Shown one piece after another: positions 2,416 through 64,000 of a stretch of 64,000 bases of DNA. The stretch lies in sequence record NC_062582.1; one strand, given 5' to 3'. The translations under genes were made by a program, and so were the position numbers. The notes beneath the pieces were generated by a model. It worked only from the letters and a program-made list of their open reading frames with translations, did not search any database and was not told the origin of the DNA. Each line of letters starts with the position of its first letter. Within the stretch, counting starts at the first letter, position 1.

Positions 2416-3243
2416 TCAACGTAACCAGTTAGGTTTCCGTGGTGGAGCTTTACGCTCCCAACCAAGAGTCTTAGCCAGTTCAGTAACATCAGCACTATCG
2501 CTCTCTAAGCCAATGTTAGCACGTTTACGCGCTTCATCTTGCAAAGCCCAGAGAACGTCAGGGGTAATAACTCGTTCGGTCTCAGAGAAGCTCTCAAGAG
2601 CTGGAGAGTTATATTTGTTAGCAGTAAAGATACCACCCTCACCAACGAAGTCCCAAGTAGAGATTTCACGGGTATACTTGATACCACGCATCATGTCATC
2701 TTGAGTAATCGACCGTACAGAGAAATAAGTGTTGATCGATGGGTTATCCAAAGAATCCTGAAGGACCTGTTTAAAAGGACCAAAAGGTTTAACTTCAGCT
2801 ACTACCATTTTAACGCGTTCGCCGTTTTCGTTAACACCATCAATAATGGACAGAGAACGAATGTGTGCACATACACGGTTGTCATCAATCTGACGAATAC
2901 GGCCGAGGTACTGTGGATCGCTCATTGGTTGACGAACGACCTTACCACCCAGTAACAAATCTTGGAAAGGTTCAGGGTGTTTGAATTCAGCAAAGAGTAC
3001 GCCTTTCTTTAAACGACGCATCAAAGGAGAATCAGGAGCGAACATCGAAACGCCGCTCGCTTCATCGTAGAACATACCTGCCGAGTTCTTAGTACCGTAA
3101 CTGCCAACGACGATTGTGTAATAGCCGTCAGCAGATGGAGTAAGGATACCTTTCTTGTTGGTACCGGCAAGCATGGTGCAGCCAACAGTAACAACTGATG
3201 GCGGTGTAGGGATCTGTGGATTTGAAGACATGTTGAATCGCAT
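2416..3243 (-). CDS. prohead (head maturation) protease, phiKZ gp175/SPN3US gp245-like
   Basis: Motifs GVLFAEFKHPE (His), RIRQIDDNRVCAHI, EVKPFGP, FSVRS (Ser), TWDFVGEGGI; C-terminal ALE/GLE autocleavage-type sites; synteny; start moved to the ATG at 3243 (AAGGA RBS). Confidence 0.85.
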   Translation of the reverse strand: MRFNMSSNPQIPTPPSVVTVGCTMLAGTNKKGILTPSADGYYTIVVGSYGTKNSAGMFYDEASGVSMFAPDSPLMRRLKKGVLFAEFKHPEPFQDLLLGGKVVRQPMSDPQYLGRIRQIDDNRVCAHIRSLSIIDGVNENGERVKMVVAEVKPFGPFKQVLQDSLDNPSINTYFSVRSITQDDMMRGIKYTREISTWDFVGEGGIFTANKYNSPALESFSETERVITPDVLWALQDEARKRANIGLESDSADVTELAKTLGWERKAPPRKPNWLR

Positions 3244-3256
3244 AGGGAATTCCTTA

Positions 3257-3979
3257 TTAAGTCCTATATAATTCTTCAATCATCTCCACAGATTCAGATT
3301 CGTTCACCAATGCAGAGTTAATACCCTCAGCGAAGAACGCACCGTTAAGCTTAGAAGTTGTATCAGAGGTGTTCCAAATAACCGACCGGAATGGAATGAC
3401 CACTGGCGGGTTAGTTGTAGCAAAACCATAACTTTGTAAAACGTGACGATACAAACGAGTCATGTCTAATGGGTCACGAGTGATCGTTGAGATAATCAGT
3501 TCAATAACAGAACGACTACCCAAGTTAACCCCTGCGTGTTCCACAGCTGTTTCAAACATGTTTGCAATATCAAAGTAGTTCATATACCAAGGGATGTTCC
3601 CTTTAGCTACAAACTCGTCGTACATGTAATACGTCAATGTATCCGTAACAACCAAAGCTGTCGTGTAGATAACTTTATCACCTGGTTCAAAAGAGAACTC
3701 AAAGTAAGGGTTACCATCGACAACAACTCGTTCAGTAGAACTAGGTCGAATACGCATCATTGCAATTGTGTTGTTTACCGCGTAGTAAGATTCTTCCATA
3801 ATGATCGGGAAGAAACCAAATACGAAAATCTCAGAACCAATTACCGCTAATTTCTTAGCAGTGAAACGTTCAGGGACATGAATCTTACACGGTCGGTTAG
3901 TAACGATCGAACCATCTTCTAATTCGACCAAGTGTTCACGTACGCGATCAGCATCACGCACTAAGGCTTTAATATCCAT
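3257..3979 (-). CDS. virion RNA polymerase beta' C-terminal subunit (phiKZ gp176/SPN3US gp244-like)
   Basis: Synteny next to protease; C-terminal IPFRSV..TSDTTSKLNGAFFAEGINSAL resembles beta' C-terminal region; start at ATG 3979 (AAGGA RBS). Confidence 0.7.
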   Translation of the reverse strand: MDIKALVRDADRVREHLVELEDGSIVTNRPCKIHVPERFTAKKLAVIGSEIFVFGFFPIIMEESYYAVNNTIAMMRIRPSSTERVVVDGNPYFEFSFEPGDKVIYTTALVVTDTLTYYMYDEFVAKGNIPWYMNYFDIANMFETAVEHAGVNLGSRSVIELIISTITRDPLDMTRLYRHVLQSYGFATTNPPVVIPFRSVIWNTSDTTSKLNGAFFAEGINSALVNESESVEMIEELYRT

Positions 3980-21940: not shown

Positions 21941-21970
21941 TCAATAGATTTTTTTCTAAATCTATATTAC
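21941..21970 (+). promoter_or_regulatory. putative early (vRNAP) promoter
   Basis: TCAATAGATTTTTTTCTAAATCTATATTAC; TATATTAC core matches the phiKZ early promoter consensus; motif recurs 5 times. Confidence 0.75.
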
Positions 21971-60792: not shown

Positions 60793-60841
60793 CTTGTACC
60801 TACGGTGCATTATATTCTGACTTAAGCAACCAAGGTACAAC

Positions 60842-61213
60842 GTGATGCTAAATCTAACACACGTACTACGCTCTCTGTTACTCATTATCCTTTTCGCATT
60901 ACCAATGAGTACACAAGCGAGTGTCGGGGTTAAAGTCGATGAACTCTACTGTGATGGTCTTAGTCTTATGGCTAAGGCTACCAGTGAAGCTAATCAACGA
61001 AAAGAACCAGAAGCCGCATGGCGGAAGAATCTTGAAACCCTGAGAGGATACGGTGTGAAGGACAAAGATAACGTTCTTTACTACATTCTCCCCCAAGCTG
61101 TAACCCAAGTGAAACGTATCTATCAATCGAAGCAAGCTCCGAAAGATGTTTACATCGCCGAATACAATCGATGCATGAAAGAACAATACGGCCAAGTGGT
61201 GGCTGTTAACTGA
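60842..61213 (+). CDS. putative secreted/periplasmic protein
   Basis: Signal peptide ending TQA; two Cys at the ends of a helical domain. Confidence 0.7.
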   Translation: MMLNLTHVLRSLLLIILFALPMSTQASVGVKVDELYCDGLSLMAKATSEANQRKEPEAAWRKNLETLRGYGVKDKDNVLYYILPQAVTQVKRIYQSKQAPKDVYIAEYNRCMKEQYGQVVAVN

Positions 61214-61226
61214 CCGAGTAATTGAT

Positions 61227-61580
61227 ATGGACCGACTGTTAGAGTTACAAGCTAATACGACAGTAATTAGAAATGAATCCGATCGAATGGATTCTATTAT
61301 CAAACTGAGTAAAGCCTTAAGTGTCGAGATTGATGCTAAGATTAATCTGGATGACAAGGAAGCAGTTGGTAAACTAATTGATGCTGCGTCGAACTGGGAA
61401 CTCACTGTATTAGTCGGTACCCAAATCAATCACATCATCGAGTGTGAACCTAAATTCTGTAAGGATCTTCCAAAGGATCTGAAACATTATAAGGATCACT
61501 TTAAGGTTTACCAAGTTAAGCACTTTCAGAACTTCCGTGATGGGATTCGCGTCCCTACAAAAGAACAGATGTTTCTGTAA
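61227..61580 (+). CDS. hypothetical protein
   Basis: 117 aa ending at a terminator. Confidence 0.65.
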   Translation: MDRLLELQANTTVIRNESDRMDSIIKLSKALSVEIDAKINLDDKEAVGKLIDAASNWELTVLVGTQINHIIECEPKFCKDLPKDLKHYKDHFKVYQVKHFQNFRDGIRVPTKEQMFL

Positions 61581-61614
61581 TCATACTGCCTTCCTTCGGG
61601 AAGGCTTTATGCCG
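61581..61614 (+). terminator. terminator of the hairpin-TTTATGCCG family
   Basis: GCCTTCC-TTCG-GGAAGGC-TTTATGCCG. Confidence 0.8.
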
Positions 61615-61663
61615 CTTTAATTTACTCACCTGAAAATAAGTATGTAACCAACAAGGAATTAAA

Positions 61664-62038
61664 ATGGAACTTATAATCGATCTAACCGGTAAAGCAAAAG
61701 GTTATAAAGAAGCATTCACGGAACTTGTGACTTCTCCATTTGCTGCTGAAGGTAACCTGCGTTGTGAATTAGGTCCTATCCCTTATACAGGGTTGACTAA
61801 AGGGCAACTTAAAGCACGTTGTACGTATATTGACCATAAGCGTGTCTGTGCTAAGTTCACTAAGTTTGATATTGATGGCGATATCGTAAAGGTTGAAGTT
61901 ACTCCATCCGGACCACTGAAAGCGCACCTTGAACAATTACTTACACAGGGTATTGAATTCGAACCTGTAGCGCGTGCCGCGTTCAACCGTGATATGGAAA
62001 TCATCCATATGTTTAATATTGACCTCAACCCAGTCTAA
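61664..62038 (+). CDS. inactive mini-paralogue of the prohead protease (1)
   Basis: RCTYIDHKRVCAKF..VEVTPSGPLKAHL aligns with protease RIRQIDDNRVCAHI..AEVKPFGPFKQVL; catalytic His and Ser absent. Confidence 0.65.
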   Translation: MELIIDLTGKAKGYKEAFTELVTSPFAAEGNLRCELGPIPYTGLTKGQLKARCTYIDHKRVCAKFTKFDIDGDIVKVEVTPSGPLKAHLEQLLTQGIEFEPVARAAFNRDMEIIHMFNIDLNPV

Positions 62039-62046
62039 GGAGAACA

Positions 62047-62436
62047 ATGATGCAAATCGTAGTTAACTTACTTATAAAACCTGAAGGCTATCGTGAATCA
62101 CTTCGCGAATATATCGCATCCGAAGCATACAAGAAAAGTCCTTTTTTAGAATGGGAAAATCCAAAAATACCATCGGGTGTTGTAGCGGAAGAAGTCTTTA
62201 ATCGTATCTTTCAGATAGACGCCAATAGAATCTGCGCAAAGATTATTCACATTGAAATCGAAGATCTTGTTGCACGGTTTATAATTACACCACATGGACC
62301 ATTGGCAAGTTTGATCGATCCCTTCAAGAAATATGCAGTTGCTACACGCATGTTAAAAGACGGTGCTATAGTTAAACAAATCCCTGGTTTTGATCTCATC
62401 CCAGTAGAAAACCATATCGAACATGTAGGAGAATAA
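62047..62436 (+). CDS. inactive mini-paralogue of the prohead protease (2)
   Basis: LEWENPK..RIFQIDANRICAKI..ITPHGPL..VATRM; His replaced by Asn and Ser by Ala relative to the protease. Confidence 0.65.
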   Translation: MMQIVVNLLIKPEGYRESLREYIASEAYKKSPFLEWENPKIPSGVVAEEVFNRIFQIDANRICAKIIHIEIEDLVARFIITPHGPLASLIDPFKKYAVATRMLKDGAIVKQIPGFDLIPVENHIEHVGE

Positions 62437-62438
62437 CC

Positions 62439-63320
62439 ATGCTTTTTATCAATATCCTTAACCGCACTCCAACAGGAATTACGCACACTGGTTTCGACCT
62501 GGTACCTAGCACGACTTTTAAAGGTGGCGAACAAAACGTAAAGCTGTTTGATTATCAGGCAATCGCTATTGAGTCGGCAGATAAGATAACAATCAAAGCT
62601 CATCTTACTAATGCTAATACCGTAATGGACCTGCTGTTGTTGGTTGATGCCATTCGTCGTATTAATCCTTCTGTACGTATCGGTGCCTTTATTCCATACA
62701 TGCCATATGCACGACAGGATCGTGTCTGCAATCCAGGTGAGGCTCTCTCAATTGCGGTTATGGCAAAAGTAATCAACAGCCTTAACTTTGACCGTGTCTT
62801 TCTGTTGGACCCCCACAGCGACTCCACTGTTGGTCTGATCGAACGTTCCATAGTTGAATCTCCAGTACAGTTCATTAGACGTAGTGATACTTTCGTTGGT
62901 ATGGATTTCTCTGAAGTTTATCTGGTTGCACCAGATGCCGGTGCACAGAAGCGAGTGAAAGCTCTGGCTACTGAACTTGGTGCAGCTGGTTACATCACAG
63001 CTACCAAAGAGCGTGATCTTGAAACTATGGAAATCACAGGTACTAAATTCGACGGCAATGTAACTGGTAAGAAACTACTGGTTGTTGACGACATCTGTGA
63101 TGGTGGCCGTACATTTGTTGCGTTGGCCAAAGCTCTACGGGAACAAGAACCAGAGGAACTCCATCTCTGGGTTACTCACGGTATCTTCAGCTATGGTACT
63201 AAAGTAGTAACGGTTCATTACGACAGTGTTGCAACAACTAACTCGTTCCAACCAACTGCTGAAGGGCAGGTTGATCAGAACGGTGAACGCGATTACAAAA
63301 TGACTTGGGTACAACTCTAA
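62439..63320 (+). CDS. prs: ribose-phosphate pyrophosphokinase family protein (possibly Adps of the NARP1 pathway)
   Basis: FKGGEQNV, PYMPYARQDR, LDPHS, VAPDAGA, VVDDICDGGRTF. Confidence 0.88.
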   Translation: MLFINILNRTPTGITHTGFDLVPSTTFKGGEQNVKLFDYQAIAIESADKITIKAHLTNANTVMDLLLLVDAIRRINPSVRIGAFIPYMPYARQDRVCNPGEALSIAVMAKVINSLNFDRVFLLDPHSDSTVGLIERSIVESPVQFIRRSDTFVGMDFSEVYLVAPDAGAQKRVKALATELGAAGYITATKERDLETMEITGTKFDGNVTGKKLLVVDDICDGGRTFVALAKALREQEPEELHLWVTHGIFSYGTKVVTVHYDSVATTNSFQPTAEGQVDQNGERDYKMTWVQL

Positions 63321-63553
63321 TGAGTCCAGAACAAACAATACAATCTGCTTTCGGTGTTGTTTTAGTAATCACGGTATTCTGTTTGGTACAGCAGATCCGG
63401 ATGGGTAAGAAAAAGAAACAACATTACGATGATTTACCAGCATGGCACAGTTGTCATAACTGGCAGCTGTTCTATCACATGGTGGGTATCCCATTTGCTG
63501 TGGCTACAGGCGTGCTGTTGGCTAAAGCTCAATCCATTTGGTTCGGTGCTTAA
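63320..63553 (+). CDS. small two-TM membrane protein
   Basis: Two hydrophobic segments; TAATG overlap. Confidence 0.65.
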   Translation: MSPEQTIQSAFGVVLVITVFCLVQQIRMGKKKKQHYDDLPAWHSCHNWQLFYHMVGIPFAVATGVLLAKAQSIWFGA

Positions 63554-64000
63554 ATGACAATACTCCATTTGTTGTGCGCTGTATTACTTGTATCCGTAAC
63601 CCTAATGATTCTAAATATCAAAGGGTACATTAAACATAATCCGTTTGCTTGGGAACCTGGTCGTCAGGGTACAGGCTATGAAAAACTAGAACTGTTCAAT
63701 CGGTGGAAGTATTTCGGCAAACGCAAATGGGATTTGTATCTGCTTCGCTATCGAGTGGGCGCAGGCATTCCTGAACACCGTGATCCTTTACCGGGTCACG
63801 AACATTACCGACTGAATATCTATTTGTGGAATGCAGATCGTGGAGGTGTTCCTGATCACGCGTTTACAATTATCCACAATCGGTTCTTTACTTTGTTTCG
63901 CCCCGACCAAGCGCCACACAGCGTAAGTACTGTAACTAAAGGTACTCGTTATGTATTGAGCTTCGGTTATTCTAAACTCCTTAAGGAAGATTTTCAATGA
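63554..64000 (+). CDS. 2OG-Fe(II) oxygenase family protein with N-terminal TM helix
   Basis: IPEHRD (HxD), PHSV (distal His), TRYVLS (2OG-binding RxS). Confidence 0.75.
   Translation: MTILHLLCAVLLVSVTLMILNIKGYIKHNPFAWEPGRQGTGYEKLELFNRWKYFGKRKWDLYLLRYRVGAGIPEHRDPLPGHEHYRLNIYLWNADRGGVPDHAFTIIHNRFFTLFRPDQAPHSVSTVTKGTRYVLSFGYSKLLKEDFQ

Follow-up and report, generated by a model that had tools for sequence, protein, structure and literature searches.

The locus examined here raises the question of what two short, adjacent open reading frames resembling the prohead protease are, whether their products can still cut, and what use a giant phage may make of them. The window, by which we mean the whole stretch of 64,000 nucleotides that was analysed, corresponds to positions 186001-250000 on the plus strand of the genome of Pseudomonas phage Phabio, a phiKZ-like giant phage of 309,157 bp with P. 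fluorescens SBW25 as host, and positions 60800-63400 of the window were 100% identical to the Phabio sequence (MF042360 / NC_062582). An earlier note on this DNA had described two tandem, catalytically dead mini-copies of the prohead protease, each about 125 aa long, and both open reading frames are present as described: gp341, mini-protease copy A (61664..62038, plus strand), encodes 124 aa comprising a gp21/S80 protease-fold core, and gp342, copy B (62047..62436, plus strand), encodes 129 aa, or 128 aa from the RefSeq start at 62050, the second ATG. The RefSeq product name for gp342 is 'head maturation protease'. The Shine-Dalgarno sequence of gp342, AAGGAGA (62037..62043, plus strand), overlaps the stop codon of gp341, an arrangement indicating that the two genes are tightly coupled; the Shine-Dalgarno sites of both genes are strong, and both frames are intact. 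The parent paralogue, a full-length S80 prohead protease (Pfam PF20034, E value 1.3e-95), lies on the minus strand at 2416..3279, and its residue numbers used below (H101, S187 and D210 for the catalytic triad) run from the TTG at 3279.

We found that each mini-protease matched the Phabio protease in BLASTP comparisons with an E value of 2e-5, and that gp341 and gp342 matched each other with an E value of 3e-13. The phrog_7478 profile ('head maturation protease', 147 positions) covered nearly the whole of both proteins, with E values of 7.7e-12 for gp341 and 1.5e-31 for gp342, and hhalign of a 12-member mini-protein alignment against six S80 proteases gave a probability of 98.4%, an E value of 5e-15 and 106 aligned columns, placing the homology to the protease core on profile-profile evidence. 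Both proteins missed the gathering score of PF20034 (13.4 and 14.0 bits vs 23.4), and a sequence-profile search of the PDB with the mini proteins returned no match. The motif pairs from which the resemblance had originally been noticed were all recovered by MAFFT and hhalign; specifically, EFKHPE of the protease corresponds to EWENPK and ELGPIP in the two mini-proteases, RIRQIDDNRVCAHI to RIFQIDANRICAKI and RCTYIDHKRVCAKF, KPFGP to TPHGP and TPSGP, and FSVRS to VATRM and PVARA. Three parts of the S80 enzyme are missing from the mini-proteases, namely the first N-terminal strand region, an internal stretch of some 30 residues and a C-terminal tail of about 75 residues; the alignment stops a few residues past the strand that carries the triad Asp, so that protease residues from about 216 to 287 have no counterpart. 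As judged from these alignments, the similarity between the mini-proteases and the protease is far beyond chance.

AlphaFold2 models, built with a 21-row family alignment, had pLDDT values of 92.6 for gp341 and 88.7 for gp342. In a structural search of all-against-representatives type, the best solved match was the T4 gp21 protease (5JBL) both for gp341 (Z 10.6, rmsd 2.5, 111 residues) and for gp342 (Z 9.6, rmsd 2.5, 107 residues), with the entries after 5JBL at Z 5.2-5.5, and Foldseek returned 5JBL at a probability of 0.98. The next matches of gp342 were herpesvirus proteases (VZV, Z 5.2; HCMV, Z 4.2), and those of gp341 were MCE-domain proteins (Z 5.0-5.5), with the VZV and HCMV proteases at Z 4.9 and 3.5. 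The structural homology on which the earlier reading depended is thus found in both predicted models, each of which places the T4 enzyme first. Since almost all of the ordered gp21 core is matched by the mini-protease models, the proteins would be small complete domains and not fragments. We also observed in the BFVD a number of proteins of 116-148 aa from outside the phiKZ group whose predicted fold resembles that of gp21, encoded by Klebsiella phage Miami, Yersinia phage fHe-Yen9-04 and Aeromonas phages AS-szw and 65.2, at TM-scores of only 0.44-0.55; going by such models, mini protease-fold proteins may be more widely spread than the S80 family. T4 gp68, a 141-aa prohead core protein encoded beside gene 21, was considered as a possible known analogue and rejected, having no similarity to gp21 or to the mini-proteases.

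The catalytic triad of SPN3US gp245 consists of H77, S153 and D178 (PMC5694885), and these residues fall in invariant alignment columns that correspond to H101, S187 and D210 of the Phabio protease. In gp342 the His is replaced by Asn and the Ser by Ala, and gp341 has a one-residue deletion before the conserved Pro in place of His (a gap, or Pro) and Val in place of Ser; both keep the Asp. The mapped states, N/A/D and gap(Pro)/V/D, bear out the statement that the catalytic His and Ser are substituted in both proteins. Across about 34 family members, the His column holds N, C, E, A, T, Y, R or a gap and the Ser column A, V, K, G, D, M or N, and since so many residues are found at both positions, the family as a whole is not selected for catalysis. 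His, Ser and Asp occur together only in 201phi2-1 gp210 among the members seen. At the D210 column, Asp is replaced only in Psa21 gp310 among the approximately 34 members, and E98, P102, R127, C137 and R189 (protease numbering) are invariant among the aligned members. The flanks of the active site are retained in the mini-proteases as E-x-x-[His]-P, R, C, P-x-G-P, [Ser]-x-R and the triad Asp. With base and nucleophile both gone, gp341 and gp342 are, on this mapping, inactive as serine proteases. The description of the pair as dead tandem copies of the prohead protease in miniature is thus supported alike by the profile comparisons, the predicted structures and the mapping of the triad, and we regard their identity as protease copies, together with their inactivity, as nearly certain.

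Truncated paralogues of this kind are not new, having been reported in 2017 by Ali et al. (Front Microbiol) as 'cryptic proteases', with SPN3US gp117, proteins of Erwinia phages, 201phi2-1 gp206 (145 aa) and PhiPA3 gp143 (136 aa) as examples (PMC5694885). By profile membership, gp341 and gp342 are members of this already described truncated-paralogue family of phiKZ-like giant phages (phrog_7478), which includes SPN3US gp117, 201phi2-1 gp206 and gp210, and PhiPA3 gp142 and gp143; a literature search for a later paper giving the family a function found none. Six-frame genome scans with phrog_7478 revealed no mini copy in phiKZ, one in SPN3US, two each in 201phi2-1 (gp206 and gp210), Viktualia and PhiPA3 (gp142 and gp143, in tandem), and three in Phabio. 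In phiKZ, the true protease was the sole match to the family profile at E values up to 10, and a full-length S80 protease was present in every scanned genome that carries the mini family. In addition, tblastn located relatives in SPN3US-like Salmonella phages, Erwinia phages, Serratia phage PCH45 and PA1C-like Pseudomonas phages. The third Phabio copy lies outside the window at genome positions 136072-136482 (L003 1501-1911, plus strand) and encodes a gp206-type protein of 137 aa with Cys/Ser/Asp in the triad columns; an early-promoter-like site at genome position 136468 overlaps its 3' end. In a maximum-likelihood tree, gp341, gp342, 201phi2-1 gp210 and the Viktualia 30-kb copy formed one branch (support 88/80), separate from a gp206-type branch that holds the third Phabio copy, with the deeper nodes unresolved. 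Identity between paralogues was 25-33%, and the family is accessory and fast-evolving.

Several further observations concern individual members. The gp210 gene of 201phi2-1 (L020 1504-1878) follows a GNAT acetyltransferase gene so closely that its start falls right at the stop codon of that gene, and the gp210 product, with His, Ser and Asp intact, may be an active mini-protease of 125 aa. In PhiPA3, gp142 (L026 1321-1827) and gp143 (L022 1402-1809) form a tandem pair of which the upstream member is very diverged, matching phrog_7478 with an E value of 3.3e-4; only gp143 was named in 2017. The flag that marks proteins detected in virions by mass spectrometry is absent on 201phi2-1 gp206 and gp210 and present on their neighbours, and SPN3US gp117 is not among the virion supplementary tables of Ali et al.

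Orthologues of the Phabio pair were found on two metagenome contigs, one of which (L027) keeps the tandem pair, at 72% and 78% identity to Phabio, while the other (L028) has only the gp342 orthologue, at 59% identity. A search for related loci in IMG/VR gave no match with the gp341 or gp342 protein, nor with the family alignment, which offered no conserved stretch. The dN/dS ratio was 0.22 for gp341 (against the L027 orthologue) and 0.21 for gp342 (against the L027 and L028 orthologues), compared with 0.06 for the adjoining PRPS-like gene. These ratios indicate that purifying selection acts on gp341 and gp342, which are real protein-coding genes and not decaying pseudogenes.

The mini-protease genes lie within a plus-strand run of about 27 kb, extending from gp297 to beyond gp351 and made up mostly of small hypothetical genes, together with genes for an RNA ligase, a dCTP deaminase, two DNA ligases, a PRPS-like protein, a NAMPT-like protein and thymidylate synthase; the protease and portal genes are 58 kb away on the opposite strand. 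Between gp340 and gp341 we located a terminator-type hairpin (61588..61615, plus strand) with a 7-bp GC stem and a TTCG loop, followed by CTTTATGCCG. GC-rich hairpins, often with a TTCG loop and then CTTTATGCCGT, are found at about 35 other places in the genome, and no other set of 9- to 12-mers recurs as often in Phabio. Because this most repeated motif often directly precedes an early promoter, it most likely ends transcription units, and the recurrent hairpin is probably a phage terminator signal. The next strong plus-strand hairpin sits past gp348, so that, with hairpins at both edges, gp341 to gp348 may be taken as one unit, comprising the two mini-proteases, the PRPS-like gene, a glycine-zipper protein, other small ORFs and a NAMPT-family gene. 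Specifically, gp343 (62439..63320, plus strand; PF13793, PF00156 and PF14572) starts 2 nt past the gp342 stop with its Shine-Dalgarno sequence inside the 3' end of gp342, and gp347 (PF04095) is separated from gp343 by three small ORFs, the two genes lying in the region from 62439 to 64000 and onward to genome position 252376 (L001 5393-9330). Another ORF of the unit, at 63554-64000, has a weak match to a 2OG-Fe(II) oxygenase (PF13640, E 0.0036, below the cut-off).

A phage gene pair annotated as Prs and Nampt is the signature of NARP1 (Adps plus Namat), which reconstitutes NAD+ against NAD+-depleting defence (bioRxiv 10.1101/2024.02.11.579819), and gp343 is, from its domains and neighbours, a candidate Adps of a NARP1-type pathway; it belongs to the context of the pair and is not a protease paralogue. 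The 2-nt junction between gp342 and the PRPS-like gene is the same in the orthologues on L027 and L028. In addition, Viktualia has a gp210-type copy close to PRPS-like and NAMPT-like genes, and in Psa21 such a copy is close to a NAMPT-like gene; in 201phi2-1, gp210 comes after an acetyltransferase gene. Other paralogues, such as the third Phabio copy and 201phi2-1 gp206, have different neighbourhoods.

As to how the pair is transcribed, the Phabio early promoter has the consensus TCAATAGA, 13 nt, TCTATATTAC, and a position weight matrix built from 17 TATATTAC sites detected 28 early-promoter sites in the genome, all 28 on the plus strand, with those inside the window at 21941, 24332, 39072, 39892, 43869, 45956 and 56633. 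No match to this matrix precedes gp341, the nearest being a weak site 5 kb upstream inside a ligase gene, and the pair would consequently be read through from upstream, or else be served by a middle or late promoter of a kind that is unrecognisable from sequence (PMC7598289). The core of the phiKZ late promoter is TATG (PMC7598289), and two TATG motifs are present in the 83-nt spacer before gp341, although a motif of this length is too short to mean much. Scans for sigma-70-type promoters performed no better than on shuffled sequences.

What, then, might the proteins do? Prohead proteases have been described as activating CBASS CD-NTases by cutting their activation loop (preprint PMC12991175), so that the statement that prohead protease activity can trigger some CBASS systems has a basis in the literature. 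The roles put forward in the earlier note, namely decoys or dominant-negative shields of protease-sensing defences, or inhibitors of premature head maturation, may be regarded as hypothetical functions that the present data neither support directly nor contradict. The C-terminal region of the S80 protease is removed by autoproteolysis and was inferred by Ali et al. to target the enzyme into the prohead (PMC5694885). The mini-proteases would neither cut nor be built into heads; they may instead be cytoplasmic, non-catalytic binding proteins, that is, pseudoproteases, and would form the first two genes of an accessory, non-structural unit together with the PRPS-like and NAMPT-like (NARP1-type) genes. 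Given the NARP1-type genes in this unit, host interaction or counter-defence would be the most likely role. The mini-proteases would then occupy something that is otherwise recognised by the prohead protease, candidate targets being the protease-recognition loops of host sensors or other segments of the A/S/G-x-E type.

Conservation of the flanks of the catalytic positions is what would be expected if the old substrate-binding region were still in use, although the cause may be purely structural, and the non-structural, plus-strand accessory context appears to fit a role in host interaction better than one in head assembly. The NARP1-type neighbourhood is weak as evidence, giant phages mixing accessory genes of all kinds, and the lack of the family in phiKZ is a point against a host-directed binder. 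A complex prediction that paired gp342 with residues 30-235 of the protease, its core, had a score of 0.00; it gave no answer and counts neither way. Overall, we rank a host-directed or counter-defence binder first, followed by a regulator of the phage's own protease, a transient assembly factor, a residual or alternative enzyme and, last, junk. As the best explanation of the data as a whole, we consider that these proteins are non-catalytic accessory pseudoproteases directed at the host, a reading that has about an even chance of being correct; the binding role with a host-directed purpose, taken as a claim by itself, is tentative and somewhat unlikely. A specific form, in which gp210-type mini-proteases act as dead 'substrate traps' on the activation loops of CBASS CD-NTases and make up a combined counter-defence operon with the NARP1-type PRPS-like and NAMPT-like genes, is improbable; if it were true, a phage would have recycled its head protease into an immune shield.

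The alternative that survives best places the target inside the phage itself, with the mini-proteases holding the full-length S80 protease or its zymogen inactive or monomeric in the cytoplasm until it is inside the prohead. Head proteins would thereby be spared premature cutting, as, incidentally, would host sensors. In favour of such regulation are the frequent pairing of pseudoenzymes with their active paralogues, the fold common to the mini-proteases and the protease, and the restriction of the family to genomes that also have an S80 protease. However, the mini genes lie outside the head module and probably belong to another transcription unit and class, phiKZ and its close relatives do without the family, and the mini-proteases are without the C-terminal region. 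We consider this explanation unlikely.

A second possibility is that the mini-proteases are transient head-assembly factors, either scaffold- or core-like or chaperones of the propeptide-bearing head and ejection proteins. Such factors would attach to head proteins around their cleavage sites and depart no later than maturation. There is a precedent in T4, where the prohead core includes the protease zymogen as a structural component (PMC5694885), and a scaffold would be expected to be absent from mature virions. Against this, the mini genes are located among non-structural genes, their copy number varies and the family is absent in phiKZ, the C-terminal targeting tail is missing, and the candidate T4 analogue gp68 is unlike both gp21 and the mini family. 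On balance, we think an assembly role has little chance of being right.

The proteins could also still be enzymes that work through other residues, the invariant Cys of the RVCA motif being one candidate, or that catalyse a different reaction on the old scaffold. That Cys (C137 of the protease) is invariant in all mini-proteases and proteases, as is the Arg two residues past the Ser position, and 201phi2-1 gp210, which keeps His, Ser and Asp, could itself be active. The serine proteases, however, conserve this Cys just as strictly without using it as nucleophile; the equivalent of H139, beside the Cys, is K in both Phabio copies and variable across the family, and a search of the family alignments for a second conserved polar residue found none that stands out. 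Residual or altered catalysis is accordingly very improbable. Finally, that the pair are functionless remains of a duplication on the way to loss, as the missing catalytic residues, the high divergence (25-33% identity between paralogues) and the dispensability of the family in phiKZ might suggest, is scarcely credible in view of dN/dS ratios of about 0.21 in both copies, intact frames with strong Shine-Dalgarno sites, confidently folded models and the persistence of the family in giant phages of Pseudomonas, Salmonella, Erwinia and Serratia.

It is rare for a virus to carry pseudoenzyme copies of its maturation protease. What is new for Phabio is the presence of a tandem pair plus a third copy in the published family, the location of the pair in a non-structural block far from the head genes, the structural support, the family-wide triad states, the evidence that the copies are under selection and their link, at the operon level, to NARP1-type genes. 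With CBASS sensors that are switched on by prohead-protease cleavage, the mini family becomes a concrete candidate for a counter-measure; if the mini-proteases did no more than help assembly or regulate the protease, the result would amount to a routine refinement of annotation.

In comparison with known systems, the mini-proteases are predicted to share the fold of T4 gp21 (Peptidase S77, 5JBL) and of the herpesvirus assemblins, but sequence identity to T4 gp21 is 12% and its catalytic dyad is absent in the mini-proteases. With the S80 / PF20034 proteases (phiKZ gp175, SPN3US gp245 and the Phabio enzyme at 2416-3279) they have in common a core of about 106 columns that includes E, P, R, C, R and the triad Asp, but their genes lie outside the head gene cluster and their products are without the catalytic His or Ser. 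The closest known counterparts are the published cryptic proteases, which are of the same size class (124-161 aa), are likewise missing the C-terminal part and likewise occur beside a full-length S80 protease in the same genome. SPN3US gp117, however, keeps Ser and Asp, whereas the Phabio pair have lost both His and Ser; and the published family corresponds to the gp206 branch and was described without a link to PRPS-like and NAMPT-like genes, whereas the pair in Phabio, a phage with three copies, belongs to the gp210-type branch.
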